Shown piece by piece: positions 14,415-63,773 of a stretch of 64,000 nucleotides of DNA. The position numbers were made by a program, and so were the translations under genes. Source of the DNA: Ophelia neglecta. Lineage: Eukaryota. Position 1 is the stretch's first letter. Every line of letters begins with the position of its first letter. The stretch spans positions 11,036,001 through 11,100,000 of the forward strand of contig OZ260666.1 of NCBI GenBank assembly GCA_965285935.1. Reading direction: 5' to 3'. The notes beneath the pieces were generated by a model. That model had not been told where the DNA came from, did not search any database, and saw nothing but the letters and a program-made list of their open reading frames with translations.

Positions 14415-15943
14415 ATTTCGAGCATTTTGTGAATTAAAAAAGATAAATATGCGTATTACTATAACCGACTTTATCAGTATCTAAACAAAAACAACATTCT
14501 ATATGCCTCCCAATATGGATTCAGGAAAAACCATGGCACAGAACATGCCTCAATAGAGATTTTGGAACATATCACATATAACAAATAAACTAAATAATAA
14601 GGAATATGTATCCTCTATTTTCATTGATTTGACTAAAGCATTTGACAGCCTTGTTCACACAATTCTCCTGTTCAAACTTCGAAACTATGGCATTCGTGGT
14701 ATTGCTTATGCCATCATGGAAAGTTATCTCACGAAAAGATGTCAGTTTGTTCGCTTTAATTATTTTGACTCTAGTCACACTGCTGTATCATGTGGAGTTC
14801 CACAAGGTTCGATTCTTGGGCCATTGTTCTTTTTAATTTTTATTAATGACTTCATCAACTCACATAAATTATCTAAAACCATCCTATTTGCCGATGATAC
14901 AAGTTTAATGCTACATGATTGTAATTATTCTAGTCTTATTCTGAACATGAACACTGAAATACAGAATGCAAACTTATGGATGCGGTCAAATAAACTTGCT
15001 ATGAATGTTACAAAAACAAAGTATATTATATTCGAAAATGCACATAAAAATTTGCCTCTTAATTCCTTAGATGTAAAACTTAATGGACAACCTCTCGAAA
15101 AAGTCCAGACCTTCAAATTTCAAGGCACTCTTTTTGACCAGCGTCTGGATTGGAAAGCCAACATAAGTGAGAAATGCAGGAAAATCTCACAAATTATAGG
15201 CATATTGAGTAATTTAAAATACTTTCTTCCAAAAGATTCACTGAAAGTAATATATACTGCTCTTGTCCAACCTCACCTAATGTATGGAATTGGTGTCTGG
15301 TATAACCCTACTAACAGAACAACATGTAATAGATTATTTCTCCTTCAGAAAAAAACTATGAGAATTATTACAAAATCACAATTCTTGGCCCACACGGAAC
15401 CCTTATTCAAAAAACTTAATATCCTCATGCTTCACGATATTTTTATAAATCGCTGCCTAAAGCTCTACTTCTCTTTTCTCGATAATCTGTTTATCTCTCA
15501 GATTTGTTAGACTATCGCGAGATTACCCCCGTAGTCATAACACCAGATCTATAGATGTAATCGAACAGAATCATATTCGAACAAATTATCTTAAGCAATG
15601 TTTATGGTATAAACTTTTTATTGCTACGCACCTAATTCATTATGATTTCAAGCACCCGCTGACCTCCAACACAAATTTTAAGAAACTGCTCTTGTGCCGG
15701 TATTCTAGTTCATGTAACGTCGTTAATTGTATTCATGCAATTTTATTCATGGCTAGAACATTCTGTAAAGTTCAACTTTTATGTTATCGTACTTCACTTA
15801 ATTTGTATCCACATGCAATCAACATGTTATTAAATTGTAAATTTAATTGTATTGTGCTGCCACCATCCAGGGAGGCCAGATGTACACAGCCTCGGCCATA
15901 ATCTGGCGACCTTAATAAAATTATTATAATCAATTCAATCAAA
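14415..15943 (+). mobile_element. 5'-truncated, frameshifted CR1-group (Crack-like) LINE
   Basis: ORF 14629..15510 has KAFD, GVPQGSILGPL, FADDT, YTALVQPHLMYG and HTEPLFKKLNIL. Upstream remnant QYGFRKNHGTEHA. 3' AATAAA plus short repeat tail near 15914-15943. Confidence 0.88.
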
Positions 15944-30802: not shown

Positions 30803-33390
30803 TTATTATTATTATTATGTTTTATTAACCTCCGCTTTCCGAAGAGCATATAAGTAGTACATGTAATGAAAATACAGGCAGTCAAAATTCAAACTGGAAA
30901 ACCATAGGAAAAAAAGGTATGTACAAAAATAAATGAATAAGTAGATTACAGCAGCTTTCACACAAGATAAACAGTATTGCTTTTATTTGACCACCCCTCC
31001 GGTAGTTTTACTGGTATTTTGGTTTATATGGGGTGCAGGACGTCGACACATTTTGTTTTTACATTTGGTTTGATATTATCATATAAGCATTTACACAGCG
31101 GTGCAGTGAACTCGCCTCTGGTACATGGCAGAAAGGACAGTTAGGACGGTCTGACGATCCCCAGGTAGGTAGGTGTCCCAATGGAGCATTCTCAGGCACG
31201 GGTTTAAATAGCCCTCTGTGACTATCATTCGTCGTTGTATTTCGGACCTCTCATCGCTTAAAGCTTCGCACTGTAGGAGAAAGTGGGCGAGGCTGTCTGT
31301 TCCCGAGCGGCACAGCGGACATTCAGAGATATGAGGTGATACATACCTCCCAAAGTGGGTATATAGAGCTGACGACTTAGTAATGAACTTCAAGATTGTT
31401 TGTACCCCTCTGTTGGCCTTCATGGTCTTTGCAGACTTCCACCACTCGAACTGCCCATACTTATTGAACAATAATCGGTAGATGTCCAGGGACGGAGACA
31501 TTACACACAGGAGTCTCCAGTCGTCTTCTAGTAATTGTTTTGTAACATTTTGGACATGTAGTTTCCATTGTCTCTTATGGGTCGCCTGACCTTTGTGGAG
31601 CCACGACATGAGTGTTTCTGTAAGACGGAACTTGTAGAATGTGTCCAGCAGGACACCTAGAGGACTATCTGGAGGAATCAATAGACCATGCTCATGTCTG
31701 GTTAATGCTCGAGTTGCTAGTTTCCTGTAAACACTGTTCGCAGGCAAATCCATAAGGTCTCTAAACAATTTGAGTCTTTGGAGGTCGAGGTAGGATTGGA
31801 CTGTTCTCCAGCCCAGTGTTGCCAACACAGCTGCATTGCTGACGTTATTAGAGAGGTTCTGGATGAGACGCGCACTACGACGATGCTCAGCTTCAAAAAG
31901 CTCCATCAGGTTAGGGCTTATCTTTAGCAAGTCGAGGCCATAAAGAAAACATGGCACTACAATTATCCAGTACAACTTAGACAGTGTTTTGGTATTATAA
32001 AGTCCGTTTGCTGTACCAATACTTATTATGGAGTTCAATTTCTGTCTTGCCTTCGCTTTTCTTAGCTGAAGTAGAGCCTCCAGCTCATCGGGTCGGTTTG
32101 CCAGAGGAATTCCAAGGTGAGTAATTCCATCTGTAAGGGGGATTAGACCCTTGCCCATGTATAACCGCTCATCTCTCCTGTCATTTGTATTCCCGTATTT
32201 TAACATTTCACACTTGGACACATTAAAAGATAGTCGCCATAATTTACAGTACTGGTGGACGAGTTCCAGTAAGATTGACATTTGACGACGATAAGATGTG
32301 ATTAACGACAGGTCATATGCAAAAACAGGGCATGAACTGTTTATATTATATACATGACAGCCAAGGTTCACTTTGGTTATGTATTCTATCAGATCGTTGT
32401 AATACAGCATAAAGAGTAACATCGAGAGCGTCCCTCCCTGGTGGAGTCCCTGGCGGACTTTAAACCAATCTGATAGTTCGCTCCCAACGCGCACTGCGCT
32501 GTAAAACTCTTTGTACCAGTGCCGTAATACTCGATAGGTTTTCCCTTGGATGCCATAGTTGAAGAGCTTATAGAATAGACCCTCAGTCCATATGACATCG
32601 AATGCTTTCCTACAGTCTAACAGCGTTACATACACCTGGTCATTTCCGTGGAGGTGTTCGTGAACTGTTTGTCGTAGTAGCAGTGTTGATTGACGGCTGG
32701 AGCAGTTAGGTTGTCCCGCCCCCTGCAGCTGATTTATGAGTTCGTGCTGTGTTGACCAAGACTCTATCCTCTTGTAATAAATGCCTTCAAGTATTTTTGC
32801 CATTGTCGGTAGGAGGCTAATTTTTCTATAATTGTCTTTAAGACGGGGATCTTTCCCCCCACCTTTAAATAGCGGTATTTCGATCGCGCGTCTGAAGTCA
32901 CTAGGCACATATTCAATGGTTACCACTGCGTTGTATAGTCTCGTAAGATTATAGATTAGGGTTCTTCCACCGTACTTAAGGTTCTCGGCCACCAGCCCAT
33001 CGAAACCTCCTGCTTTACCCAATTTCGCACTGTTCACGGTAGCCTCGACTTCAGTCTCTGTTATTGGCTCATCTAGGACACAGTCAGTTTTGGAGAGTGA
33101 CAATATGTCATTTTCGTGTACCTTTTCTTCAATAATTTCTTTGAACTCATTGTCATATTCTGGTTCATATTTTGGGGTGACTAGGTTAGTAAAATACTTT
33201 CTCCAATCTTCGCGGATATCGTGGATGTCAACAAGGAGATTTCCATCTTCTAGAATGATATTGACCTGTGCCCCGATTTGGCTTTTTCTCTTGTTACTAA
33301 TTTGACGCCAGTAGTAATTCTGATCGATTTCGCCGCTACTCATTATATCTTCTTGATCCTTCTCTTCCTTTTCATGTTCAGCTTGATGAC
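30803..33390 (-). mobile_element. 5'-truncated RTE/RTEX-like LINE (RT plus C-terminal Cys/His finger), probably inactive
   Basis: 750-aa ORF 31091..33343 has NYRKISLL, LDCRKAFD, QGGTLS, FAYD (catalytic FADD mutated) and CPLC...HFLLQC. AATAAA plus (TAA)n tail at 30803-30826. Clade assignment is inference. Confidence 0.88.
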
Positions 33391-34376: not shown

Positions 34377-37300
34377 TTTAAACATATTTATTTACATAAT
34401 TTGGATCTTACAGAAGCCTGGGGCTTAGAAGGTAATTTCCAAATAAAGCATTAGCACAATATTTACAAATATGCATGAGATAAAAGATGATGAGATGAGA
34501 TGAAATGTAATGGAAAGGTACAATACTCGTAGTTTAGAGTCATTGGACAAGATTTGTCTACAAAGTTGATGAATTCAACATAAATAGATAGAGAGTTTTA
34601 CAATTCAGTGAGTAAGAGAACAAGTATACTAAATATAAAAATATAAAAGAGTAAAAGTAAAATTGTGGATGAAAGGCATGGTTTTCATAATGCAACAAAA
34701 ATAGAAGTAAATGTAGGATAGTCAGATGGTCAGGGCCAAGGCGCATGTCTCCATCACCGCACAACAAGAATGGATGAGTGCGGTTGAGACATACTAAGCT
34801 AGCCAGGGACAACTGTAAAATATAAATTATAAGAGCCTGTCATCGGTCACCGTTCGCAAAATTTAACAAAAATGTGAATCTGTAAAGTATAGTTAGATCG
34901 TTAGGAAACAAATCTTTGTGACCTTATAATATACTGGTCAACAATATAAGATAATTCAAGAGACATGTCATCATCATCACAGTTAAGTATGGTAGCCATG
35001 CGGTCATCAGGCAAAATAGAATAGAGGTTTAGAAAGTCGACTAAGTGATTACAGAGGGACGCGTACAATGGACAATATAAAATGTAGTGGGAAGGTGTTT
35101 CGTTTTCCAAGCCACATAGACAAATGGGAGAAGTAATGCAATGATTAAGATAAAGGTGGTTATTAAGGCAACTACAAAAGAGTCTGCACTGTGCAAGAAA
35201 TATCTGAGATATTCGCGATCCCATTAAAAAGTATTTCGGGGGTTTCATGGGGCAGTTTCGGTTAAGCTGTTTGAATAAATTTTTATTCGTGCATTGGCGA
35301 GATTCTATGGAAAGGGTATTCCACTCGGTAATTGACTTATAATAGAAAGAAGATTTGTACTTTTGAGTTCTACATTTTGGAAGGGCTAAAAGATTGTCAG
35401 ACCGACTATGTGTGCTATAGGGATGCGGAGTAGTTACTGGTAAATTTTCCCACAGTTGGATAGGTGTGATTTTGTTGTATATATCAAATAGTTTTAGAAG
35501 CATCGCCACCTTGCGGCGTGTCTCTAGAGTTTCCCATCCTACTTCGAGTAGAAGCTGGCGGTGTGAAGTCCCTCGCCTTGCACCGCAAACAAGACGAGCT
35601 GCCTCAAGGTTTATATTTTCTAATATGTTGGACAATTCCATAGACGAGTGGTCGAACAGAACAGAGCCATATTCCAGAAGAGGTCTAATATAGGTTTTAT
35701 AAGCTATATCAAGGCCCTTCCTAGACACTTTATATTTCACACTTTTCAAAATATTCAGTCTTCGGGTAGCCTTTTTACTAACATTAAGAATGTGCTCTTC
35801 CCAAGATAAAGTATTGGTGAGAATAACTCATAGGAGAGAGTAAGACGACGTGTTTATACAAGGAGTGTCGCCGAGTGACAAATCCAAAACAAAAGAGGCG
35901 CGCTTCCTACTAAATAGGATACATCGTGTTTTTGGCACACTAATTGAAACCTTCCATTTATTACACCAATTATTAATAAGAGAGAGGTCGTTGTTAACTG
36001 AAAATATTGCAGGGGCTATATTTTTTGAGGAAAACCTATGGAATAAGGAGGTATCATCAGCAAAAAAAAAGATAGAGCTGGAAATTTCACGCACAATGTC
36101 ATTTATATAGATTAGGAAAAGCAGGGGCCCTAGAACAGAGCCTTGCGGAACTCCAGCGGGAATAAATTTGTATGAGGAGGCGCCGCCAGGTAGAACAACC
36201 CGCTGGCGTCTGTCAGTCAGGTAGTCGGCAACCCACGACAGAGTGTCCCCATTAATGCCACAATGTTTCATCTTATGAATGAGACCCTTATGCCAAACCT
36301 TATCAAATGCCTTAGTAAAGTCGATAAAGACTCCTATGACTTCGTCTCCATAGTCGAGTGCTTTGTGTATTTGTTCACAAATTTCGATTAACTGGTTTAC
36401 AGCAGAATCATTCGGGATAAACCCAGATTGGTTAGGAACAAGAATGTCATGTGCCTTAAGGTGGCTAAATAAATGGTCAAACATTAGTCGTTCGAAAACT
36501 TTAGATAGGCAGGGTAGTAGTGATATCGGGCGATAGTTATTGCAGTCATGCACACTGTTCTTTTTGTGAAGAGGAATAACATCGGCAGATTTCCAACATG
36601 TAGGAAATTTACACTGAGATAAAGAAATATTAAATAATGCTGCCAAAGGTTCCGACAGGGGTGCGGCCGCCTCCTTGAGGAGAAAATTGCCTATTTTATC
36701 CTCCCCAGTAGCCTTAGAAGGCTGTAAACTTTTCAGAACACCATACACCTCGACGGCGGAAATTACTTTAATTCCAATAGATGATGTAATGGGAGGGGCA
36801 TCGTTGTCTGCAGGCAGATGCTCGTCCGACCCGGCCAATGATGATTGGCCAACAAAAAATTCATTAAATATTTGGGCTTTGTGGGAGGGATCGGTTATTA
36901 CATCGGCATTCTGATGCAAGGGAGCTGACGTCGGAGAAGAACGTGTATTAAGAGTTGTTTTCATCAGTCTCCTCCAGCTAGGAGAGGAAATTTCATTAGC
37001 AGAAAACATTAAATCGATTGATTTGTCATGCTTTGCTTTGACATCACGCACTAGGTAAGTAACATGGTTTCTCGCCAAATTATACCGACGAAGGTGATCA
37101 GAACTAACGTGTTTAACCTTATGTAAACGGTCACGTTTCATCATCTCCCGTCTTATAGTTGAGTTAAACCATGGCTTGTCGTGGGGTCGGATAGTAACTG
37201 TGCGGTGAGGAAAACAATGCTCACAAATTTGTAAGAGAAGGTTTGTAAAATTATTGGTTACGTCATCAATATCCGCAAGAGACAATATCAAGTCCCAAGG

Positions 37301-38546
37301 AGCAGTATATATTAGATCTCTGTAGAGGTCACGATTTCCACTTTTAAAGTCCCAAACCTTTCTCTTAAAACACGGACGTTTTGCAATGGCCTTAAACATT
37401 TCAAGATATATAGGACAGTGGTCGCAATTATCCACCAGACGAGGAAGTGTCCCTTTTGAAACCACGTGATTAGAATCGTTAATAAAAATATGGTCTAGGC
37501 AAGCTTCAGAATGAGAGTCACTGCGTGTGACAACGCCAATTAATTGTGAGAAACCGCGCTGCCTGAAAAAAGCATTAACGAGTCGACCGTCTCTATTAGT
37601 ATCATCAGTTGAACACCACTGATGATTTTTTGCATTCGTGTCGCCAATGAAAACCATAATGTTGTGGCTTTCAGAGGAAGATTCAATTATTTCATTTATG
37701 CCACTTAGAAAATGAAGGCAGTCCTCGTTTGGAGGCCGATAATAAAAGCACAGTAGCACGGAGAAGTTACTTGCTTTTACACTTAGACATATATTTGCAA
37801 TCAAAGCTGATTCTACAGCGGCATTGTGTCTCCCATTGAATGATTCTGATAAATAAACAGCAAGGCCGCCACCTATACCCTCTCGGTCCTTACGAATAGG
37901 AGACAGGTAGCCGGGAAGTATTATAGAGGAACTAGGGGTAGTAACTTTGAGCCAAGTTTCAGATAATGAAATTACATCGTGTTGATAATATGACGCAAAG
38001 GCGCACAAGTAATCGTATTTTGAAAGATTTGGCGACCCACCTACAATAGCCGCGGTCTGTAAACTACGTATATTCATGTAGGATACTTTAAAGCCTACAT
38101 TTCGAGCGGGCCCAGGATTAAGTTCAATGTCACCGCACGAGCGGAGCACATTGGGTGCTACATATAAAGTGAACAGGAATGAAGGGAATATTATAAACCA
38201 GAACAAGGCGTCGCTCTTTAATTTCGATCTGTTTAAAGTAAATAGTCCGATCGCAGCCCGATATTGGTCAGTGCAAATCACGGTGAGCGATACGGCGGAG
38301 AAAAACGAATGATATGTGACTTAATGTTGTTTGAATAGAGACCAGCTGCATGAGAACAGAGCAAATTGGTCCAATGTCATAACAATGCAGACAAAACAGT
38401 ATAGTGTTAGTATCAGGACATACATGTACTTGACGCGTGCCAGTACAAACGTTAAATGTACAACTAAACAATGAATGAGTGATATAGGGTGAAATGAACA
38501 TGAAGCAAAACAATTGAAGTATGGTTGTGTGAGGAAGAAGAAAACG
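34377..38546 (-). mobile_element. CR1-group LINE, ORF2 (2A-like peptide, APE endonuclease, RT, Zn finger) with one break near 35830; no ORF1; 14-bp TSD
   Basis: ORFs 35828..38281 (SETWL, YRPP, GDTN, CLDHI, CDH, KAFD, VPQGSVLGP, FADD) and 34901..35749. TSD aaatctattcttgg at 34363-34376 and 38547-38560. 3' end aataaatatgtttaaa. Confidence 0.93.
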
Positions 38547-38683: not shown

Positions 38684-41600
38684 AGATTGTAGATTTAGTA
38701 TGCATAGGACACAATACAATAGGACAGTGGTATTCAGTGGTCATATTTTGTGCTAAAATATGATGAAGATTCACTAAACCTGTTTGAGAATAGTCGTTAA
38801 CAGTGGTGTGAATGAGTACAGGACCGGGGAGAAGGCCTCCTCGTGAAAAGGTGACTTTTTTGGCTAGTTTTTACAAGTGTCCAGTACTATCACTGCAATA
38901 TCGCTCATTTAACTTCCCGCCTCAATGACTTTGTTTACCATGTGTAACACTGGCCTTCTCAAGTACGGTGGCCCATGTGTACACCGCTAACCGAACATTG
39001 GGGCAATTACCCTATGCTCTACTTGGCCTACCTGAGGATCTATTATGCCTGCCGAAAGTCAAGCCCGTCCAGGGTCTGATGGTGATACCAATACCATAGT
39101 ATCAGATGAGGAGGATACACAATATGAAGCATCACAAGTGGAAAATGATATTTACCAGGAAATAAAAACAAACTATGGGCGCCTATCTAAGGGTGATTTC
39201 AGAGATACTTTATCAATTAATCAGGAACTTAAAGATCTGAAAAGGATTAGAGCAGCACTTTACGATTCCTGCCGCTCAAATGTGGACAATACTCTACAAG
39301 GAAACCTAATCACTAGGAAAGATGGTGGAAACGGTCTTACTGCAGCGGAAAAAATATGCGAGGATATTTACTCGTTATTTCACTATGCTGAAAGGGATGC
39401 TTCGATGGATATTGTGAAAATCCTTAACGAAAAATCTAGAAAAGCGCATAAGCAATCTGTTCAGGTCCAGACCTCAAATTTGAATAACAGTATTGACAAT
39501 AATGACGAATGGGAGAATGATGCGGAGGAGAATAGCATCTTCTCCCTAAGGGCATTCTGTGGAGACCTGCTCAAAGCAAACGCCTTAATGCGGGACGAGA
39601 TAAATATTCTAATTAAAGAGAACGCCACTCTTAGGGCTGAAAACAAGGAACACCAAGTCCAAGCTCGGAAAATAAAGGAAGATCTGTCGACCCTGAACAA
39701 AAGAATGGATGAGTTGGACTCTTCTCGTTCGAAAGAAAAGGAGACCAAAAATAAGGAGGATTCGCGCACAAAAGAAAGAATAGATCTTCTAAATGACTCG
39801 ATAAATAGCATCTTATACCTAATATTTACCAATGACCAAGATAAGTCAAGCAAGTCTATAACAAAAAGAATCGCTGCAAGATTTTCGGCAAGAGATTCCC
39901 ATGATGGAGAGAACGAGAAGGATGACGAAATACTTACTGATCTAAAAAGTTTGATGCCAAGGGGCAATGTTGACAATTCTGGTTTGATCGAAGAGGAAAA
40001 TGTCTTCAAAATAATAAACCAACTTGAGGTGGAGCGTAGGAAGGAATCCCCGAATGAGACAATGGAGATCCCGGTTACCAAGGAAAAATCTGTACAAATT
40101 GTTGGAGAAAAATCTGGAAACGACCCTGAACTCGGCCAGAATCATTATAAAGGAAATCAACACGATGAGGAAGTCCGCCAGGTTCGGCCAGATAGAAAAG
40201 GCAAAACAGCGTTGGGAGTAACCACAAACACTGAGAGTAAGCTCATAAGACACGAACCGCGCACCAATTGTTGATGCTGAGGACTCAAACACATTAGAGG
40301 GTTTTACATTAGTAAAACATAAGCCACGCAGCAGAGCGTTTTACATTGGTAGTGTTAGGAAGAAGGTTTCTGTTGACCACACAAAGGATTTGTTGGTTGA
40401 ATACATTAGGCAAGTAGGCGCTAGAATCACCGACTGTGTCCCTTTGAAGGAGACTAAGTCTTACATCTCTTTCAAAATTAACGTTGCCGCAGAAGATGCT
40501 GAGATGGTCGAGGTTCCCTCCTTCTGGCCCGTAGGTGTCTCTGTGAGAGAGTGGGATTACTCACAAAAGGAAAAAGTCAATTGAACAGTTATGGAAAAAA
40601 AGTCGTTGCGTATCAGTACTTTTAATTGTAATGGTGTCATGGCAAATAGCAAACACTTAAGGAAATTGTTGGACCTTTCTGACGTTATGTGCCTACAGGA
40701 ACATCACCTGAAGCTTGAACATACCAATTATCTTCACTCCCTACATCCAGATTTCTCAGCTTTTGTTCGTGTTCATGGTAAAATTGGTGAACAAAGGAGA
40801 GGAGGGATTGCAATCATGTACCGCAAAGACATAAATTTTGCAATAACCAACCTTGATTTTGTAGGTAATGACCGGGTCCAGGGAGTTGAAATAAATACAC
40901 CTGAGTGTACCTCCATTTATATAGTCAATGCATACTTGCCAGCAGCTAACCACAGCATCGTTTAATTTATAAAGAACCTAGAGATTTTGATGGCCATGAT
41001 AGACTGTTTGTCTGAAAGAGGAATGGTTTTTATCTGCGGCGACCTTAACTGCCATTTAGGTGCCGAAGCCGGGCCGAGAGGTCTAGGGCCTCAAACTACC
41101 GTGGCAAACTCGTCCTACAAAACCTCCACTCCCGTCATTTTGACGTGATGAACTGTCACTCTGTTGGTAATGGCCCTTTTGGTACTTTCCTCTCACATGG
41201 CTCCCAAAACGAGACACACGTAGACTACTTCTGTCCACCTTTGGTAAACAATGGTCTAGTTATTTCCTGTGAAGTCTTAGAAGACCCGGCCAACACCTCC
41301 GACCACCGGGCTATCAGAATCAAACTAAGCTCGAACCTGGCTCGATACCCCCCAAAACTAGGAAGATACCGAAATGGGAAGGTGCCGACACTTCAAACTA
41401 CACGAGTTATTTAGACGAAATTTTGAGGGAATCCATAGGAGTTTTGTCAGTTGATCACGGAGGACTAGATGTATACGCAGAGACCCTACTCAGATGCCTT
41501 CAACAGGCCACAGTGGTAACCATTCCAACAAAAGATTTTTGCCCTTTCAAAAATCATACTGGGACAATGAGCTGGAGGCACTCCACACTTTCCAGAAACA

Positions 41601-44226
41601 AAAGAGACGTTTGTGGATTGATGCAGGTCGACCCAGGGGAAGGGGCCATCAATCCTACTCCGAATACAAGGATGCTAAATGTGCTTTTGCGAAAGCTCAA
41701 GAAATCAAGATCATGCAACAAGAACAGAAAAAATACAATAAAGTTGAACTCCATCAAGAGACCACCGTGAGGCAGTTTTGGCAGTTCTTCAGAAAAAAAT
41801 CACAAACATCATCAAATTACAATTCAATAAAAGAGGATGACACCGTGTATACTTCACCAGATGAAGTACGACGTTTTTGGCACAATCATTTCAAAGCTCT
41901 ACTTAATGAGCAACCAACTGCGAAAGACATTAATGATGACGATTTTAAAACAATGATAGATGATTATATAGAATCACTGACTGCATTAGCTGATAAGGAA
42001 ATGGATTCTACTGGTATCTTATCTGACGAAATAACTCCAGATGAAGTGGCCAATATATGTCGCGGTTTAAAGAAAAAGAAAGCCCCTGGTATTGACCTAC
42101 TAACATATGAACACTTCATACATTCTGGCCCATATCTTCATCGAGTTTTGAGTGATCTGTTCAATGGGATGATAAGATCCGCAATAATACCTAAGTGCTT
42201 TAAGGTTGGACTGATATATGTTTCCCACAAAGGACGAGGAAAATCGAAAAGTGACAAAAATTCCTATAGAGGGATAACTCTTTTGCCGACAATCAATAAA
42301 CTATTTGAGAAAATATTATGGAACAGGATGCAGCCCTGGTTGACTGAAGTTGACCTCCCTCACCCCCAACAAATAGCATGTAGGAGAGGGAATAATAATA
42401 TAACCTTGTCATTTTCCCTACAGGAGGCAATATTGAAGATAACCGAAGATGGTGGTCGTGTTTTCGCTTGCTTCCTTGACTGTGAGAAAGCCTTTGATAG
42501 GGTTTGGATAAAGGGTCTATTGTACAAGTTATACAAGAAGGGCATCAAAGGTCAACTGTGGTTGTTATTCCAAAACTGGTTCCAAAACTGTGAAAGTGTG
42601 GTGATGATAAATGGATCCTGCTCTAAGCCGTTCCCTGTTGGCCGGAGTATAAAACAGGGAGGAATCCTTAGTATGTTCTACTATGTCCTTAACTGCTCAG
42701 ACCTTCATGACTTTGTAAATATAAATTCATCTGGCCTAACAGTAAGTGACACTAAAATGGATTCTCCTAGTTTGGCGGACGATACTACCTTGTTATCGCT
42801 CACCAAGTCTAGACTTCAAAATATGATGAACAGGGCCTATGAGTACTCTAAACTGTGGAGGATGATTTACTCGAAGGAAAAAAGTGTATGTATGGTCTTC
42901 GGAGGAAAGAAATACAGAGCAGGACCAAATACAAATACAAAACGATCATGGTTTCTAGGTAATAACGAAATAAAGGAAGTGGACACCGTAGTACACGAAG
43001 GTGTCCGACTTTCTGTAAACCGCGACTCTCGAGAACGCTCAAAGGAGAGCCAAATCCATCATGGCACAACTTGCAGGGGTTGGGGTGGCACCTTCAAACA
43101 TGAACCCGATTGTTGGTGTGAAATAATATCGAACAATGTGTCGAACTTCCTTCCTCCATGGCTGTGAATTATAGACGGACCTTTCGAGACAGGAAATAGA
43201 GGACCTAGAGAAAAATCAAAGATTCGTATGCAAGAAATTACAGGGTTTGCCAACCCGTACACACAATGAGATAGCCACTGGCACCCTGGGGCTAATTTCT
43301 GTTGAGGCATTTATGGATCAACAAAAGTTAAACTTCTTCTATAAACTACTAAGCTTATCAAAAGGGGACGTTTGTAAAACTGTGTTCCTGGACAGACTAT
43401 TTACATGGATTCTCAAACCTGACAGAGTAAGGAATGGTTATGTTCCTAACATTTGGAACATTTTTTGTAAATATGGAGTGGTTCCATATTTTTACACAAT
43501 GTGCACAGCAGGAACCGACATGACAAAGCAAGGATGGAAGCGCCTCATCAGAGATGCAGTTCAACGACGTACGTCAGAAACTGCTGTAAAAATCTGGAAA
43601 GGAAAGCTCCAGGCTGTTGGTTCCTATCTGTAAATCGAGAAATGCGTGTCCTCAACCTATATCAAATAGCGTTGAGAAATGTAGAATACAAACCCCAGCT
43701 ATTGAACTTGGTAAGATTCCTTACACTTACCTCATACTCCATCGTTTGTCCGGTGTGTGACACACATGTTGTTTGTTCATGTCAATCTCCGCTTCTGATT
43801 GAAACAATTCTAGATCAGTTGGACATCCATGTCGGCGTCAGTTTGGCTTATCTGACTGAACAGGAACTCATGCCACACATTTTAGGACTACCCTTCCCTA
43901 GCTTAGACCAGGAGGGGCAAGACGCCATGATGTGTTTACTGGCCAAGATGATATCACTTTATGTTAGAGTTGTAACGTTTTAGTGCTGATTAGAAACTTT
44001 AGTTGCATAACGTTATTGCTAGATATAGTTAATAAGATTGACACTCTTGGATAATGACATTGACGAAAGCCTAAAGAGTTAATGCGGATTTGTAAGATAT
44101 ACGTGAAGACGGCACGTAATACCTGTCGTAAACTGTATATAACATAACTTTTGTACCTTTAATTTGCTTGTGAACTAGTTGATATGTATGCTCCAATATA
44201 AATTGGGAAAATAAATTCAATCAATC
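38684..44226 (+). mobile_element. Near full-length RTE/RTEX-like LINE with ORF1 and ORF2, decayed
   Basis: ORF1 39045..40584 (coiled coil, C-terminal SFKINV...FWPVGVSVREW, stop at 40272). ORF2 from 40591 (STFNCNG, LQEH, GDLN, SDH; RT LDCEKAFD, KQGG, LADD) is split by stops and frameshifts to 43983. Tail ggaaaataaa-ttcaatcaatc. Confidence 0.9.
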
Positions 44227-47076: not shown

Positions 47077-47634
47077 AATGGGAATCTGAATTCAAAAAGT
47101 TTATATCATAGTCCCCCATAAAACAACAACTTTTCCTTCAGTCTGTATTATGGATAATATAATATAATGGTTCGGCATGCAGAGACGACCTTAACAAATC
47201 TCAACAAATATGTAACTGCTATTAAACAGGACTTGGTTTGAATCACTCATAGGGAATACTACTTTAAGCAGAACATGAAAATAATTTATCACAGTCCGAC
47301 TCATCGCATTCAGGTTTGTGATGGTTTCTTGACACACTTGATGGATAATATTAGTATAAGCAATTATATATATGATATTCCCAAGTTGAAAATTATATTC
47401 GTTTTGGCCGTGGTCCGTGGACGGAAAAGAATCCCCAAATGTTAGCTACTTGTTCTAGCTGGTCTATTCAAATGAAATAGCATTCATATCTATACCATAT
47501 AAATATCTCATATAAATATTATATTCATAACTAAAATGGATTTGTTATCCTCTGATCGACGCTGATACCGCCCCCCCCCCACCACCACCACCCCCTAATC
47601 ATTTTCGAAATTGTGATTTTTTCCCATGTTTTTT

Positions 47635-48384
47635 TCAAGACTTAGCGATGTCAAGCACAGTGCGGCCGTTGACGTTGTTTCGAGTAACATCAAACCCTTC
47701 GTCTCGTAGATATTCAACAATGTCTGTATTCTCTTCCAATTCGGCGGCGTGTATAGCCTCAACATTGTTGTATTTGTCATTACGTTTGTAAGGAGTGCGT
47801 AAGGCAAGGTGCTCGGCAATATCAAATCGGCCAAACAACGGGGTGTGGCCTTCTGCATCCTCAACGGTCAAATTGGCACCCCTTTCTACCAGCAAATCAA
47901 CAGTAGCGATATGCCGATTCAAGCATGACAAGTGCAAGGCGGTTTTTTGCCCTTTGACGACTTTATCAATTTGGATACTATCATGAGAAGACAACAAATC
48001 GACAACCTTAACATTTCCCCTTTCTGCTCCGCGGTGCAGCGGAGGAAAGAAATCTTGCCCAGTTAGGTTTACGTCAGCGCCACCTTTTAACAAAATTTCA
48101 ATACATTCAAGGCGTTCGTAATCCGAGGCTATTTGAAGAGGTGTTAATCCGAGAACCCCCATTTTGTTTAAGTCTGCATCATTGGTGACCAGTGACAGAA
48201 ATTTATTCATGTCGTTTATTATTATAGCCTCGTGGAGTCCTGTTTGAGTTTGTTTTCCCGCATGAGCTAGTGCTTGCTCAGGTAAATCAAAGTTGTCTAT
48301 TTCGAATCTAAGGTCTATCAAAGATTGCCCTTGCTCCTGTAGAACGAGTCTGTCTTCATTGGAGGTACCGCCGTGTGTATGTAA
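47635..48384 (-). CDS. Ankyrin-repeat terminal exon (about 6 repeats), probably the cytoplasmic domain of gene B
   Basis: GLTPLQIAS, PPLHRGAERGN, KTALHLSC, GHTPL, EAIHAA and GRTVLDIA motifs. Phase-0 acceptor aattattgcag|; TGA at 47635-47637. Confidence 0.9.
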   Translation of the reverse strand, partial: LHTHGGTSNEDRLVLQEQGQSLIDLRFEIDNFDLPEQALAHAGKQTQTGLHEAIIINDMNKFLSLVTNDADLNKMGVLGLTPLQIASDYERLECIEILLKGGADVNLTGQDFFPPLHRGAERGNVKVVDLLSSHDSIQIDKVVKGQKTALHLSCLNRHIATVDLLVERGANLTVEDAEGHTPLFGRFDIAEHLALRTPYKRNDKYNNVEAIHAAELEENTDIVEYLRDEGFDVTRNNVNGRTVLDIAKS

Positions 48385-51300
48385 CTGCAATAATTAATTT
48401 GGAAAATAACAATATGGCCACAACTAAAAAAATAAAGCTTTCAAAGTTAAGTCACCAAATATAATTTTTTTTTGCTTTCCTCAAGTGTTACAGCTACAAA
48501 GGACTACTTATTTGATCTACTAGCCGCGAAACAATTTCCGAAAATATAATGTGACAGTTAACTCTTCCAATAGTGGTCATGTCGTTCTCCCTCCGCTGAT
48601 AATATATCATTGAACTTCTAAAGCAATATTCCATAGCACTTCCTCTTTCAAACTGACTAAATAAAGGCGGATATAAGAGATTCATTACTGGCTTAATTGA
48701 AATACCAATGTACATTTATCTTTGCTTAGAAAAACACTGCATGTTGAAAGCAGTATTGTAATTCCCCTGAACGTATGTGGCCTAAAGGATCAAATTCAAA
48801 CTTTAATTTTAAACGTTTAAACGTCAGAAAACGTTTCGACGCATAGCTTATTTTCATACATTCCCATACTAATAAATATTTCATTTAAAAGTAATCATTG
48901 CTGAGGTTACTACACAGAGATTGCCACATAGTTTGCCGAGTGGCCTAATGTCGTCAATATTGTGTGCAGGATAGGCTCAATTATGTTATATAGATATCTT
49001 GCTCAACGATATAGAGTCAATAATGGCAGAGCCACGTTGTTTCGGTACATAGTTCACTTACTTTTCTTCAACACTTAATCATTATGAATATATATGTTAT
49101 CAATGAATCGTGCCTTTCAAGAGTATACATTCCAAAAATATTTATAGACATGTTTATTTTCTTATTATAATGAAGTTATGACACTCACAGCAAACATGTC
49201 AATATCATATGATTACCTTATCATCTGAGTGATTTCGCTGTATATGTCGAAAATACAGACAAGTAAAAAAACAATAACAGACAGCGTTGAAAGGACCAAA
49301 ACGACACTTAAAATTGCACGCTGTACATTGCTATATCCTAGCACAATTGGAGTTGAATATTTTTCTAACTCCATTCGCCATCGATATTTTTCGACGAAAC
49401 TAAATAATAATGAGTTTCACTCGGTTAGATTTGATCTAATTAATTTTCAAATTATAATTGGACCATAAAGTACAATTTCCCATCAACTTTCTTGATTTGC
49501 GCCTTTTGCAATTTTACCGTGTAATCAGCGGTGCCCAGACCCCTTTTGCCCAGGCCTTAAGACATGTGGTCGATCTGATACATGAGTGCAGAAGAGTGAG
49601 AAATTAGTGGTTTCTGTTGAATGTTACTGCATGATCCTGTATACAGGACTCGCACTCGCCATAGTAAAACCAGAGAATGCGCTTTCCACTCAATTTGGTC
49701 CGAATGAGGTACGCAATATTTAGGCCGTTCACTTTTAGGCTTGGATCTATATGTGAATGATTCTTACTGAAACACAATGATATGTTACCGATACGCCTGT
49801 TAAGTTATAATAAACAGAGAGTGCCTGATTGAAATAACTGATAACATTTTATATATAATGCCAATGAAAAGCATACATATTTCTCTAAATGAACATTGTT
49901 TTGAAGTAACATTTACATACTTCATCCAGCTTACAGATTATTTTTCGCATATATTCTCAAGCTATTGACATAAGGGCTTTATCTCTGATACTTATTATAA
50001 GGCCCAGCTCCTCCTAAAGTTTCCTGGATCATAAACAAATTAGTTGTTTTCCATTAGCTTAAGTCATGGAACACTGTATTTTCATGGATAATTTATATTT
50101 GGCAAGTGTTATACTGACCGCATCAGGTTGATTTTGGTTTAATCAGCCTCGAATCCATTCCCGTTTCAACTATATAACTGACATTTTGATTATATCATTG
50201 AAATTTTCCTATTTGTGGGACACCCACACTTTTTATGAATGACTTACTTTTCTAAAGCAGTCAAGTTCTTTCTGCCCGGCGCGCTGTCGTTCATTCGATA
50301 TTTGATCTTCAGCATCCACAAGTACTTCAGAATCATTTGATAATTCATTCTGAATTAAAAATATATTGGTGAGAATAATAGAATGAAAAGACTATGAATA
50401 CTTTAGTTGCTTCTTTGCAGCTAGAAGCAAGACAGTATAAATACTCACTGACTAATCGCAGAATTTACAACGGGTAAGTTCTTCGTATACCAAATGCACG
50501 GGTCAATCATATCGCCTTACCATATTGCTTGAAATAAGTCCTTAGTAACATAAAAATATGTAATGAAGTTATGACACTCACAGCAAACATGTCAATATCA
50601 TATGATTACCTTATCATCTGAGTGATTTCGTTGTCTATGTCGAAAATACACACAAGCAACGAAAACAATATCTGACAGCGTTGAAAGGATCAAAACGACA
50701 CTTAGAATTGCACGCTGTACATTGCTATATCCTAGCACAATTTGAGTTGAATATTTTTCCAACTCCATTCGCCATCGATATTTTTCGACGAAACTAAATA
50801 ATAATGAGTTTCACTCGGTTTGATTTGATCTAATCAATTTTCAAATTATAATTGGACCATTAAGTACAATTGTTTATCATCTTTCTTGATAAGCGCCTTT
50901 TGCAATTTTACCGTGTAATCAGCGGTGCCTAGGCCCCTTTTGCCCAGGCTGTAAGACATGTGGTCGATCTGATACATGAGTGCAGAAGAGTGAGAAATTG
51001 GTATTTTCTGTTGAATGTTATTGCATGATCCTGTATACAGGACTCGCACTCGCCATAGTAAAACCAGAGAATGCGCTTTCCACTCGGACAGCGGGGGGAT
51101 CTAGGACCACTGTTTAATTGCTAATTTGAATCAAAATAGCAAACACTTTTGTATTTTGTAGGTAATAAATAACTAACGTTTGTTATAGAGTACAACCCGT
51201 TTACAGCAAGGAGAACTTTCAGCACATAATATATTTCAGTAGCGTCGCCAAAAAATTGGGTCCGAATGAGGTAAGCAATATTTAGGCCGTTCATTTTTTG

Positions 51301-53428
51301 GCTTGGATCTATATGTGAATGATTCTTACTGAAACATAATCATATGTTAACGATACGCCTGTTAAGTTATAATAAACTGAGAGTGCCTGATTGAAATAAC
51401 TGATAATATTTTATGTATAATGCTAATGAAAAACATACATATTTCTCTACATAAACATTGTTTTGAAGTAACATTTACATACTTCATCCAGCTTACAGAT
51501 TATTTTTTGCATATATTCTCAAGCTATTGACATGAGGGCTTTATCTCTAATACTTATTATAAGGCCCAGCACCTCCTAAAGTTCCCTGGATAATAAACAA
51601 ATTGTTTTTTTTTCCTTTATCTCAAGTCATGGAACACCGTGTTTATATTAGGCAAGTGTTATACTGACTGCATCAGGTTGATTTTGGTTTAATCAGCCTC
51701 GAATCCATTCCCGTTTCAACTATATAACTGACATTTTGATTATATCAGTGAAATTTTCCTAATTGTGGGATACCCACACTTTTCATGAATGACTTACCTT
51801 TCTAAAGCAGTGCAGTTCTTTCTGTCCGGCGCGCTGTCGTTCGTTCGATATTTGATCGTCAGCATCCATAAGTACTTTAGAATCATTTGATACTTCATTC
51901 TGAATTAAAAAGATATTGGTGAGAATAGGAAAATGAAAAGACTATGAATATTTCAGTTGCTTGTTTTGCTACTAAAATCAAGACAGTATAAATACTGACT
52001 GACTAATCGCAGAATTAACAACGTACATGTTCTTCTAATACCAAATGCACAGGTCAAACAATTCCCCTTACCATATTGCTTGAAAAATGTCATTAGTAAC
52101 ATAAATATAAGTAATAAGGTTATGACACTCACAGCAAACATGTCAATATCATATGATTACCTTATCATCTGAGTGCTCCCTTTGCCTACGTCGAAAATAC
52201 AGACAGGCAGCAAAAACAAGAACAGACACCGTTGAAAGGACCAAACCGACACTTAGAATGGCAGGCCATACATTGCTAGTTCCTAGCACAATTTGAGTTG
52301 AATATGGAAACAACATTTCTGTTTGGAGCATATCAGTTGTTGGTGTTGTCTGTCTATTCGGCACATAGGTGTCTAATGGATTAAAACATATCGAAATTTT
52401 CAGCTTAACACTATAAATATGCACATTATCGAAGCAGTCTCTTGTCCTCAAGAAATCAGATTTTAACTTGTTTTAAATAGTAAAATTAAAATGACCAACC
52501 TTTGACGTGAACGTAGATTTGTGTTTTACTTGGTTTGTACGCAACAAAATTCAAGATCACATCGACTGTTTCATTTCCGCTTTTACTGAATGTCATGGGT
52601 CCGCCTTCGCAGTGAGAGTCCTTGTGTTGGGTACCACTGCATTTGAACTGTTTCTGGCCACCAGATATGGTACAATAGACAGGGGGATCGGCTGCTGGCA
52701 TCACTACTAGCATTGAAATAGTTCCATGTTTCTCTAGTTCAATGCGCGTTCCATTGATTGAATTCATTAAGGAGGTCTCAACTGTTGCCTTGGTGTATAA
52801 GGCCGGATTCAGGTATTTGGATGAATCAGGGCAGGCTGAAAGAATACACTTACGATTGCCAAATAAAATAAACTCAAACTAATAGGTTTTAGTCAGTAAA
52901 AAGGGAATCGTAGTAAATGACATGTACTAAGCAAAGAACTAACATGAGGCCAGACACAAGGCAGGGAAGCCAGAAGGTTAATGGTGTGTGATAAAGAAAG
53001 ACATCTAGTGTTTTTAGTATAGGTGGCACGTTATGGTGCGGACTCTAAGTTTTGTTCCTTCTAAGGGCACAATAGAAGTATTTTTATTGGCCGCTAGTTA
53101 CCTGATGAGGTCACCACGTGTAAGTCGGCTTCGTCTGCTAGAAGGCGTAACGGATTGCCGTAGTATACATCCAATGTATATGTCCCGTTGTCTGACATCA
53201 TTGCGCGGTTTAAGGTGAATCGGAAAGACTCATTTTCAACAATATCTACTCTATTCATCAACTGTTTAGCCTTTTCTTTTCCGTACTTTTCCATAAGAGG
53301 GACCCAATCTGGATGAGACTTGTAGAAATGCATTGAATTCAGCTCTCCTATACTGTGGTTGTATCTCCACACGAAGCTGGCAGAAGTACCATTACAAACG
53401 TAGACTGTTTCCGGACGTTTAATCCAGC
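47635..53428 (-). CDS. Gene B: V-like Ig domain - beta-sandwich domain - TM - linker - ankyrin repeats. Predicted exons 53102-53428, 52500-52835, 52161-52372, 51798-51899 (and/or 50248-50349), 47635-48384; candidate leader exon 54761-54859
   Basis: Canonical splice sites with compatible phases (1,1,1-to-0,0,0). V-like GTSASFVW...FTLNRAMMSDNGTYTL...ADLHV; TM WPAILSVGLVLSTVSVLVFAACLYF then RRRQR. Joining to the ankyrin exon is inferred. Confidence 0.6.
49168..52305. repeat. Tandem triplication of the gene B TM/linker segment (units 49168-50560, 50561-~52113, partial ~52114-52305)
   Basis: Anchor gttatgacactcacagcaaacatgtcaatatcatatgattaccttatcatctgagtg occurs three times; long near-identical stretches between units; unit 2 has an extra block at about 51085-51255. 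Confidence 0.95.
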
Positions 53429-62102: not shown

Positions 62103-63773
62103 TTTGATAGGCAACGAGGATTGAGCATAGTACGATGACGGACAGAACACACACTAGTGTGGTAGTCACCAGTGTCACTTTAGAAGCATTCCACGCATGA
62201 CCTAGGGGAATATGCATTGGTCCATATCAGTATTAAGAAATTGTACAGTATTTATATAATATTACATATCCGAAATTACCTTACACATGTCTCTACAAAA
62301 TTTCCTGAATGCCTGTGCCAATCAAATTATAGCATAAACTATTTTTGGTGTAAATTCAGTATGTAACATGATACTGAAGATGAAATAAAAGCATTTTAAA
62401 ACAATCATTTACCAACAGTCACATTAAGATATAAAGCAGGTGACTTACCTTTCATAGTATCATCAGTAGTAAATGACGTAGGTGAAACATGTTTCGGGTG
62501 TAATGCGGATGGTTGAAAGTCTGTGACGATGCAAAAAGGCACAAGTGTCAATAGTATTTTAATTAGGTACGTAAGCGAAAATAAATCAATTCAGTTGCCT
62601 TGCCCTTATCGTTTTGTTGCCATTGACACTTAACGAACCTACTTTACATAGATAACTTTTATTTTGCCATTAACAAACTCCCTGAACCATCCTTACTCAC
62701 CATACATCCTCTATCGGCCTATTAGCTCTGCTCCAATACACTTTCTACACTGATTTGTATTTATAAATAGTGATTTTCATACGAGGGAAATACGAAAAGC
62801 TTCAGGTGTGACAGAAATACAGGAAAGGTGCTATTAACAAACGCACTGAAGCTTTCTATCCTAAACGCTTACATGTACCCCAAGCATGATATATATAATG
62901 GCAACCAATAATATATATAAATAATGGCAACTGAAGAAAAGGACACATTTTTATTGGGAGAAGGTAAACATTCAGAGAAACAAGACAAACCCGCCCCAAC
63001 CCATGGCTACTTGAATCAATGTTTCCAAAAGATATTTAGGTATGTAGGTTTACTGGGTGCTACGGGGAAGATCTGTACCCACCGATATAAGCACTGTTTT
63101 CTGACTGCAGATAAGAGCCCAATTCCTGTCCACGACACGCGTACTTGCTGATCTTGTTCCTATGCAGTCTTGGAACATCAAAGGTAGACAAAAAAGACGC
63201 GTTTTCTATTGTTGACCCACTTTCGACCCAAATATAAGTCATTGGGGGTCGATGGTCTGCCGGCAGGGAGGTTGACTTAACATCACATTTTAACTTGTAT
63301 TTTTCTGATTCTATAGTGGCGGTCGATGGTTCTCCTGAAGTAAGAACATTGTTAAACAGAGATGCATAATGAGAATATTTTGCCATTGGTGTTTTATATA
63401 AGATTTGCTTACTTTTATTTTCGATTATAGGCAGAAGTTGTATTTCGTTGTATACCAATGCATCCCGAGGACTTACCCCATACAAAAACAGTGTTTTTTT
63501 CGTGATAGTTCACTGCACGACAGTCGTACGTTCCGGCGTCCTTTAAGGTAACATTTATCAGGGTAATAATGACCAATGACGTATTGCTCCAACTCATTTG
63601 GAGACGGCCATCTAAGGTCTTCTCACCAGTGTGAAACACCTTGTAGTTATTTATGTTGAAGTCATGTTTTCCTCTATTTCCATAGCAGTTGACTTGCTTC
63701 CGTTGTCTTCCTTCTTGGAGATTCCACGTAAGATTGGCGTTACTGCCGGTCGAAACCTTAGTGACGCGATGAC
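62103..63773 (-). CDS. Gene C: paralogue of gene A (atypical V-set - Ig2 - stalk - TM). Exons 63477-63773, 63083-63334, 62449-62520, 62103-62201; leader beyond the window; tail unresolved
   Basis: Phase-1 AG/GT exons of 297, 252, 72 and 99 nt. GSNANLTW...QVNC...ITLINVTLKDAGTYDC; LKC..STSLP..MTYIW..YACRGQE; TM VTLVTTTLVCVLSVIVLCSILVAY. Confidence 0.88.

Follow-up and report, generated by a model that had tools for sequence, protein, structure and literature searches.

Judged from the sequence of its loci, a type I receptor that joins an Ig-like ectodomain and a transmembrane (TM) helix to a tail of ankyrin (ANK) repeats is a genuine and repeatedly conserved architecture of the Ophelia neglecta genome. 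The representative studied here lies on the minus strand of a 64,000-nt stretch of contig OZ260666.1 (GCA_965285935.1, positions 11,036,001-11,100,000; hereafter the window, whose positions serve for all feature coordinates) and is made up of five exons in the order V, B, TM, linker and ANK. We favor, as rather probable, a joint reading in which this locus encodes a type I Ig-TM-ANK membrane protein acting as a scaffold-type signaling or anchoring receptor, and in which the gene belongs to a subfamily numbering 11 or more, itself part of a V+B receptor cluster of no fewer than 120-150 genes. The gene is laid out as follows:

56187-56091, minus strand: candidate signal-peptide exon, 32 codons plus one base, phase-1 GT donor
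53428-53102, minus strand: V-set Ig-like domain exon (V), 327 nt, phase 1 to 1
52835-52500, minus strand: second ectodomain exon (B), membrane-proximal Ig-like beta-sandwich, 336 nt, phase 1 to 1
52372-52161, minus strand: TM exon with a Thr/Pro-rich stalk, TM helix and basic stop-transfer, 212 nt, phase 1 to 0
51899-51798, minus strand: acidic linker exon, 34 residues, 102 nt, phase 0 to 0
51585-51547, minus strand: possible alternative terminal mini-exon, 12 codons and a stop, phase-0 AG acceptor, frame read as open
48384-47635, minus strand: terminal ANK exon with a 47-residue spacer, ~6.5 ankyrin repeats and TGA, 750 nt including the stop (coding 48384-47638)
46875-46870, minus strand: first AATAAA 3' of the stop, a pattern match giving a putative 3'UTR of ~0.77 kb if used

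All ten splice dinucleotides of the five-exon gene conform to AG/GT and all phases are compatible. Our re-reading of splice sites and frames agrees with the coordinates and phases that the first-pass annotation gave for the TM, linker and ANK exons, and also with its description of a 750-nt ANK exon that begins at a phase-0 acceptor (ttattgcag) and has no upstream start of its own, as the first 59 residues are devoid of an in-frame ATG. The TM exon encodes a hydrophobic segment of ~23 residues followed, on reading of the sequence, by RRRQRE; it is 96% identical to that of the young paralog L014 and 91% to that of the young paralog L013, the corresponding values for the linker exon being 100% and 82%. 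The candidate signal exon, selected with a home-made hydrophobicity and donor filter, is an ATG-started hydrophobic frame without interruption in either young paralog; L015 has a similar MGF[VI]T... exon ahead of its V exon, and a tblastx search for a signal exon conserved between subfamilies found nothing.

The exons were searched and folded individually rather than as one joined protein. The V exon scores ~21-22.2 bits (E=1.7e-4) against the Pfam V-set profile, just below the cut-off of 26, and 12 of the 28 family members match this profile at E<=0.01 (best 1.1e-6). Its AlphaFold model (pLDDT 89.6) has eight strands in a clear V-set fold, a V-type beta-sandwich including the C' and C'' strands. 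The closest PDB structures to this model are MPZL1, CRIg and Nav-beta2 (TM-score 0.82-0.86), and its top 50 PDB matches are V-type domains without exception (50/50, TM 0.65-0.86). With strands assigned from the sequence pattern alone, the canonical cysteine pair of strands B and F is missing: the exon has one invariant Cys only (residue 11), and the D-x-G-x-Y-x-C motif reads ...GTYTL..., Leu or Ile replacing the Cys family-wide. Six N-glycosylation sequons are distributed across the ectodomain exons, four of them in the V exon. The B exon gave no match in the Pfam scan; its AlphaFold model (pLDDT 88) is all-beta, and the structure matches are generic Ig-like sandwiches (RhoGDI, filamin, MAdCAM and ICAM; Z about 8). 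As modeled, the B exon folds as an Ig-like sandwich. Genome-wide, the V exon has at least 120 relatives and the B exon at least 150, each of the latter immediately downstream of a V exon.

The tail is recovered by Pfam as tandem 33-residue ANK repeats well above threshold (Ank_2, 83.4 bits with a cut-off of 27.3, 1.7e-23; Ank, 69.8 bits with a cut-off of 21.1, 1.1e-19; Ank_4, 64.7 bits). It corresponds to a single unit of the ~211-residue ANK super-repeat that builds giant ANK-array genes elsewhere in this genome; their open frames span 1,600-5,300 residues, and module matches recur in them at a 633-nt periodicity. The Ig-linked tails and the giant open frames have in common a hallmark short repeat, TPLFGRxDIAEHLA, and 35-40% identity over the unit; in the giant arrays the unit is repeated in tandem many times, with neither Ig nor TM near the matches, whereas the receptor has exactly one unit on a branch of its own. 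The short repeat GHTPLFGRFDIA of the window ANK exon, which had earlier been taken for an in-frame deletion and a possible sign of decay, is not a lesion, since it is kept in all paralogs as well as in the donor-type arrays. In a tree of ANK modules a branch with 86/93 support places all Ig-linked ones on one side, a topology compatible with a single capture; the likeliest history is one capture of the ANK unit, followed by its spread through gene duplication. The earlier proposal of exon capture is supported to this extent, the ANK part deriving from the module used in the giant arrays. No ANK-module copies were found within 1.5 kb of the 12 best caspase loci.

The V-B-TM-ANK order is kept at no fewer than 11 loci belonging to four or more subfamilies, which remain collinear at only 32-53% identity to one another. 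These loci comprise the window gene, L013, L014, L015, L016/L018 (five near-copies, L005-L009), L017 and L043; at them V, B, TM and ANK share a strand and fit into about 6 kb, and the order and strand of V-B-TM-(linker)-ANK are the same in L014, L013, L015, L016/L018, L017 and L043. The window ANK exon is 84%, 82%, 48%, 43% and 36% identical to those of its paralogs, and in each paralog it follows V and B exons. L015 and L016 have a phase-0 donor at the TM exon and a phase-0 acceptor at the ANK exon, and in all three young copies (window, L014 and L013) the phase-0 ANK acceptor is conserved and fits the phase-0 donors of the linker and TM exons. The joining of TM and ANK is established at the DNA level in two paralogs: L017 has a TM+ANK exon of ~1036 nt whose phase-1 acceptor fits the B-exon donor, and L043, on another contig (C7), encodes both in one open frame of 257 residues. 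As helix and repeats share an uninterrupted frame there, no splicing has to be invoked. The Ig-ankyrin chimeric receptor first proposed for the window is thereby upheld as an architecture. On the question of a single clade of ANK-tailed genes, the ectodomain trees (V and B) need 3-4 label changes, none of them forced by a strongly supported branch.

The intron between linker and ANK exon is enlarged by a tandem duplication, which is common to the window copy and L014, the unit being single-copy in L013. The duplicated unit runs from within the TM exon, taking in its 3' portion, through the intron and the linker exon; the extra material comprises one intact linker exon and two defective TM-exon copies:

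52305-49168, minus strand: tandem duplication, unit ~1.55 kb, 2.1 copies, 86-94% identity (repeat search; blastn/tblastn)
50762-50610, minus strand: TM-exon copy 2, open frame, no acceptor of compatible phase, Asp within the helix
50349-50248, minus strand: second linker exon copy (LK2), AG/GT intact, open, 85% identical to the first (LK1)
49359-49217, minus strand: TM-exon copy 3, a frameshifted remnant found as two tblastn pieces in different frames

Going by its intact signals, LK2 is a possible extra or alternative cassette; TM-exon copy 2, whose phases were analyzed by eye, is probably not used.

The most serious alternative to a working receptor is that the family is real and the window copy is a young duplicate drifting to a pseudogene, with a tail free of protein-level constraint; we regard this as unlikely, but as the strongest of the competing readings. 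Comparisons across subfamilies give the V, B and ANK exons a dN/dS of 0.24-0.30. Within the trio of youngest copies the ANK exon has a value of about 0.8-1.1 (1.11 for window versus L014, 0.78 versus L013), and its conservation in these copies does not exceed that of the 3' flank (window identity to L014 and L013 of 93% and 91% in the exon, 95% and 93% in the flank). All three young copies differ in their C-terminal ends: a 2-nt deletion in the window ANK exon brings its stop forward by 14 codons relative to L014. The defective TM pseudo-exons left by the intronic duplication also fit such drift. The second helix of the last repeat is missing from the whole young group and present in L015, L016 and L017. 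On this basis, a dN/dS near 1 together with the C-terminal frameshift, some relaxation of the window-copy tail is real. Against outright decay, the five exons are open with canonical splice sites throughout, and diversifying immune-type families likewise show dN/dS near 1. Moreover, the ANK exons of the young copies contain a single internal indel, in frame and 15 nt long, in 747 nt, the density in the 3' flank being ~7 per 500 nt; indels are thus about tenfold rarer in the exon than in the flanks and frameshifts are strongly depleted. These exons are also without stops, and in a neutral simulation the frame survived in 2-18%. Finally, the stretch from V to linker is 97-100% identical to L014, an identity kept by a recent conversion tract.

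It is improbable that the ANK exon is transcribed separately from the Ig-TM part, or that the receptor mainly ends at the mini-exon at 51585-51547, which would make the chimera rare or absent at this locus. This mini-exon is phase-compatible and has a stop, and could possibly yield a short-tail isoform lacking ANK; its duplicate in the second copy of the tandem repeat has an altered stop. A 3.4-kb intron of duplicated sequence also separates linker and ANK exon, and the splicing of linker to ANK in the window copy is predicted from phase-compatible splice sites. A search of public sequencing runs found no RNA run, the three that contain the window being DNA contigs of one sample, in which introns are covered and splice joints absent. 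However, the ANK exon has no start codon ahead of residue 60 and begins at a conserved acceptor matching the upstream donors, L017 and L043 encode TM and ANK without an intron, and collinearity has outlasted divergence to 32-53% identity.

Very improbable, finally, is a Notch-like mechanism in which ligand-triggered cleavage in or near the membrane frees the ANK domain for the nucleus or cytosol: the resemblance to Notch/LIN-12 is a formal one (single-pass type I receptor, juxtamembrane spacer, then ~6-7 cytoplasmic ANK repeats), but the Pfam scan detected no EGF, LNR or heterodimerization domains, the ectodomain being instead a V-set Ig and an Ig-like sandwich, inspection of the translated exons revealed no RAM-like or PEST-like region and no basic nuclear-localization-like cluster besides the stop-transfer RRRQRE, and the nearest relatives of the module are the lineage-specific giant ANK arrays of this genome.

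The combination of Ig ectodomain, TM helix and ANK tail was not found in the protein databases or the literature that we searched. Protein word-index searches with the L017 TM+ANK frame (361 aa, such that full-length proteins of ~600 aa were reachable) and with the window ANK exon returned generic ANK proteins only, at no more than 37% identity and none with an Ig Pfam domain. As the proteome of the Ophelia genome itself is seemingly missing from these collections, they show absence in other species only weakly, and a search of all representative proteins with the ANK exon, being swamped by giant multi-repeat ANK proteins, is silent on architecture. The literature search for Ig-TM-ANK receptors likewise found none.

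Among known systems, the vertebrate KIR/LILR/SIRP receptors and Hydractinia Alr have a comparable layout, with an N-terminal V-type domain, a membrane-proximal Ig-like domain and one TM helix; their families, too, are large and clustered, duplicate fast and have modular tail exons. The Alr family comprises multigene immune-type IgSF receptors with motif tails (PMC9546547). A V-type domain devoid of the canonical cysteine pair recalls the "unusual" Alr domains, a likeness of architecture. These receptors signal via short tyrosine motifs (ITIM/ITAM) or charged TM residues, whereas the window gene has a folded 200-residue ANK block instead. IkappaB and NF-kB p100-p105 similarly use ~6-7 ANK repeats as a protein-binding block, but they are soluble and combine it with a degron and Rel-homology context, neither of which occurs in the window receptor; none of the searches placed their ANK domains with the nearest relatives. 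The plant ACD6-type ANK-TM immune proteins are membrane proteins whose ANK repeats face the cytosol and serve immunity; they cross the membrane several times, carry the repeats at the N-terminus, lack an Ig ectodomain and come from an unrelated lineage.

Returning to the favored scaffold-type receptor, we infer that the window copy is expressed and spliced as a membrane protein comprising, in order, a candidate signal peptide, a V-set Ig domain, an Ig-like sandwich, a Thr/Pro-rich stalk, a TM helix with basic stop-transfer, an acidic linker and ~6.5 ANK repeats. Ligand binding or clustering of the ectodomain outside the cell would bring the ANK tails together, and the gathered tails would dock cytosolic partners; such a protein would be a signaling or anchoring scaffold rather than an enzyme-linked or tyrosine-motif receptor. 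A more ambitious idea, to which we give little credence, is that the ~211-residue ANK unit is a lineage-specific signaling adaptor module used both on Ig receptor tails and in the expanded ANK-array genes; if true, ANK-ANK or ANK-partner docking would wire receptors to effectors as death-fold, TIR and ITAM modules do elsewhere. The usual signaling devices of antibody-superfamily surface receptors are kinase domains, death/TIR folds or short tyrosine motifs. A duplicated family that is conserved and carries a folded ANK block instead would be a new way to couple an Ig-type sensor to the cell interior. It would also be a clear case, in a lophotrochozoan-type genome, of domains shuffled between the V+B receptors and the ANK arrays, both of them repertoires in rapid expansion.

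A reading of the minus strand combined with tblastn mapping yielded the following exons for the receptor gene:

53428-53102, minus strand: V exon, 327 nt, phase 1-1
52835-52500, minus strand: exon B (second Ig-like exon), 336 nt, phase 1-1
52372-52161, minus strand: TM exon, 212 nt, phase 1 to 0
51899-51798, minus strand: linker exon, 102 nt, phase 0-0
48384-47638 plus TGA, minus strand: terminal ANK exon, phase-0 acceptor
56187-56091, minus strand: candidate signal exon, picked by a hydrophobicity and donor filter; ATG start, hydrophobic core, GT donor in phase 1

All acceptors of the gene are AG and all donors GT, and the terminal ANK exon has no in-frame ATG upstream of residue 60. Thus, the exon coordinates and phases of the first-pass annotation are correct. 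Pfam makes a strong ankyrin call on the terminal exon (Ank_2, 83.4 bits; cut-off 27.3) and places the V exon just under the V-set threshold (21-22 bits; cut-off 26). The TM exon encodes, in order, a Thr/Pro-rich stalk, a ~23-residue hydrophobic helix and the motif RRRQRE. The proposed signal exon is open in both young paralogs (L013 and L014), and a similar MGF[VI]T... exon lies 5' of the V exon in L015, a 53%-identical paralog. A run of ~30 G with GGT repeats (47560-47592), 45 nt past the stop in the presumed 3'UTR, is kept at varying length in both young paralogs.

No RNA run containing the stretch was found among the sequencing runs searched; the three runs that contain it are all DNA contigs from a single sample and cross the exon-intron borders without splice joints. 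The comparative case for the Ig-TM-ANK join, drawn from genomic sequence, is strong. A whole-genome search with the ANK exon recovered two paralogs at 82-86% identity, one at 49%, five near-identical copies at 42-43% and one at 36%. Every fetched locus (L014, L013, L015, L016/L018, L017 and L043, the last an Ig-TM-ANK locus on a different contig, C7) has V and B exons upstream of the ANK exon, with strand and order unchanged. Their identity to the window copy drops to 32-35% in L016 and L017; therefore, the V-B-TM-ANK arrangement has outlived most of the sequence. In L017, one exon of ~1036 nt, whose phase-1 acceptor matches the B-exon donor, encodes the stalk, TM helix, stop-transfer and ANK repeats, and in L043 TM and ANK share a 257-residue open frame reaching beyond the end of the fetched DNA. 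In these two loci TM and ANK are joined at the DNA level, independently of any splicing inference. L015 and L016 each combine a phase-0 TM-exon donor with a phase-0 ANK-exon acceptor. Comparisons between subfamilies give dN/dS values of 0.24-0.30 for each of V, B and ANK, which are rough because dS is near saturation. There are at least 11 Ig-TM-ANK loci: the window copy, L013, L014, L015, the near-copies L005-L009, L017 and L043.

The window copy, L014 and L013 lie within colinear segmental duplications of >12 kb. From linker through V (window:51727-53428 vs L014:4518-6216) the window copy and L014, which is 160 kb away, are 97-100% identical, introns included, whereas the DNA flanking this tract is 90-95% identical on both sides, with 93% in the ANK exon and 95% in its 3' flank. 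The tract looks like the product of a recent gene conversion that would have homogenised the ectodomain and left out the ANK tail. In the ANK exon, dN/dS of the window copy is 1.11 against L014 and 0.78 against L013, and thus the amino-acid sequence of the tail is at present evolving either without constraint or in a diversifying manner. The C-terminal ends of the three young copies also differ: a 2-nt deletion in the window copy puts a TGA directly after ...DIAKS, the L014 frame extends 14 codons past that end, and L013 terminates earlier, at a stop of its own. None of the three has the second helix of the final repeat, which is kept in L015, L016 and L017. These ratios and the shortened, divergent ends would suit a copy still drifting into decay; however, the sole internal indel in the 747 nt of the ANK exon (15 nt) is in frame, as against 7 indels per ~500 nt of 3' flank, and when random substitution was simulated at the observed levels, the frame stayed open in just 2-18% of runs. 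We therefore consider such drift unlikely, and favour an ANK frame that is probably kept by selection while its sequence is permissive or diversifying.

The region around the intron between the linker and ANK exons contains these features:

49168-52305: tandem repeat, unit 1.55 kb, ~2.1 copies
50349-50248, minus strand: second linker exon, with intact AG/GT and an open frame
50762-50610, minus strand: second TM-exon copy, without an acceptor in a usable phase
51585-51547, minus strand: alternative terminal mini-exon, 12 codons plus stop

The tandem repeat is common to the window and L014 and absent from L013; a third TM-exon copy inside it is frameshifted. Since the second linker exon has intact splice sites and an open frame, isoforms could carry either one linker or two. 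The mini-exon, which the first-pass annotation had raised as an alternative terminus near 51585, does exist in a compatible phase and may give rise to a tail-less isoform. Each 1.55-kb unit also carries a ~200-nt SINE-like-looking element (49500-49700 and 50900-51120).

The assembly spans 762 Mb (GC ~36%), and the window, which abounds in LINE-type reverse-transcriptase open frames, belongs to a multi-megabase cluster of Ig-type receptor genes. Long LINE-type reverse-transcriptase/endonuclease frames occupy 590-1891, 14629-15510, 31091-33343, 34901-38281 and 40591-43983, some apparently intact (750 and 817 residues). Two more Ig-like exons of another type, on the minus strand at 24389-24676 and 63060-63485, share the motif ...MTYIW...SCRG... 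and are parts of neighbouring same-strand receptor genes; the latter may mark the 5' boundary of the gene studied here.

The ectodomain was studied using alignments of 28 V exons and 25 B exons, all from the O. neglecta genome. Here and throughout, searches, fold predictions and alignments were run on individual exons. The V exon has a confident predicted fold (pLDDT 89.6), and its top-ranking PDB hits are without exception V-type Ig domains (MPZL1, CRIg/VSIG4, Nav beta-2, nectin, P0 and PD-1; TM-score 0.82-0.86). Exon B is predicted with confidence to be an all-beta sandwich (pLDDT 88) and matches generic Ig-like sandwiches only (RhoGDI, filamin, MAdCAM-1, ICAM and SYG-2) at Z ~8, the background level in such searches. 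Thus, on predicted folds, the ectodomain is correctly described as Ig-like: its first domain is clearly of V type, and its second is Ig-like but unclassified. Members of the V domain family (window:53103-53426 and the V-exon alignment) do not have the canonical Ig cysteine pair; Trp and Leu/Ile take the expected positions, as assigned by sequence pattern. One Cys in the V exon (residue 11) is invariant, as is the first Cys in exon B (window:52501-52833); we infer that the two might pair as an interdomain disulfide. The V and B exons together carry six N-glycosylation sequons.

The genome search with the ANK exon also matched many giant open frames (1,600-5,300 residues), in which matches are spaced 633 nt apart (e.g., C9:2407243, 2407876 and 2408509, on the window's contig), each covering about residues 65-247 of the tail. 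Therefore, the tail corresponds to a single unit of an ANK super-repeat of ~211 residues. The giant ankyrin frames (G000:C9:2407243-2411538 and others) are built of such 633-nt super-repeats, with ~six ANK repeats each, one of them short and bearing the motif TPLFGRLDIAEHLA. The in-frame deletion that the earlier annotation read as possible decay is instead a hallmark of the unit: the short repeat GHTPLFGRFDIAEHLA is present in all Ig-linked copies and in most of the giant-array units that were sampled. A maximum-likelihood tree of 29 ANK units separates the ten Ig-linked units from the remainder by a branch with UFboot 86 and SH-aLRT 93, a topology that fits, with moderate support, a single capture of the unit followed by gene duplication. 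Five Ig-ANK genes each have a giant ANK frame 7-12 kb downstream, but in the tree these adjoining frames do not cluster with the units of those genes. As the V- and B-exon trees neither resolve the ANK-tailed genes as one clade of the receptor family nor refute this, there may have been tail swapping or loss among members of the cluster. At least seven short frames (303-324 residues) at G000:C9:14.3-15.0 Mb contain an ANK block that shares 29% identity with the tail; they may form a separate family of small ANK genes or be additional receptor tails.

An all-representative protein search with the ANK exon, dominated by giant multi-repeat ANK proteins, turned up only generic ANK proteins and no protein combining Ig with ANK. 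Word searches with this exon (best match 30% identity, E=5e-21) and with a 361-residue TM+ANK frame, the latter reaching full-length proteins, gave the same result. Absence of the architecture from other species is weakly established, since the collections searched evidently exclude O. neglecta's own proteome. Full-text literature searches found no Ig-TM-ANK receptor; a paper on Hydractinia Alr mentions ankyrin solely for the Shark kinase (PMC9546547).

As to function, the suggestion of a Notch-like release of the ANK domain finds nothing in its favour here beyond a formal resemblance to Notch. The ANK unit is absent within 1.5 kb of the 12 best plain caspase loci. On the most economical interpretation, the gene would encode a surface receptor with a tail that docks cytosolic partners in its predicted ANK groove. 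More boldly, the ANK unit might be a shared adaptor, linking Ig receptors to the ANK-array effectors of this genome.
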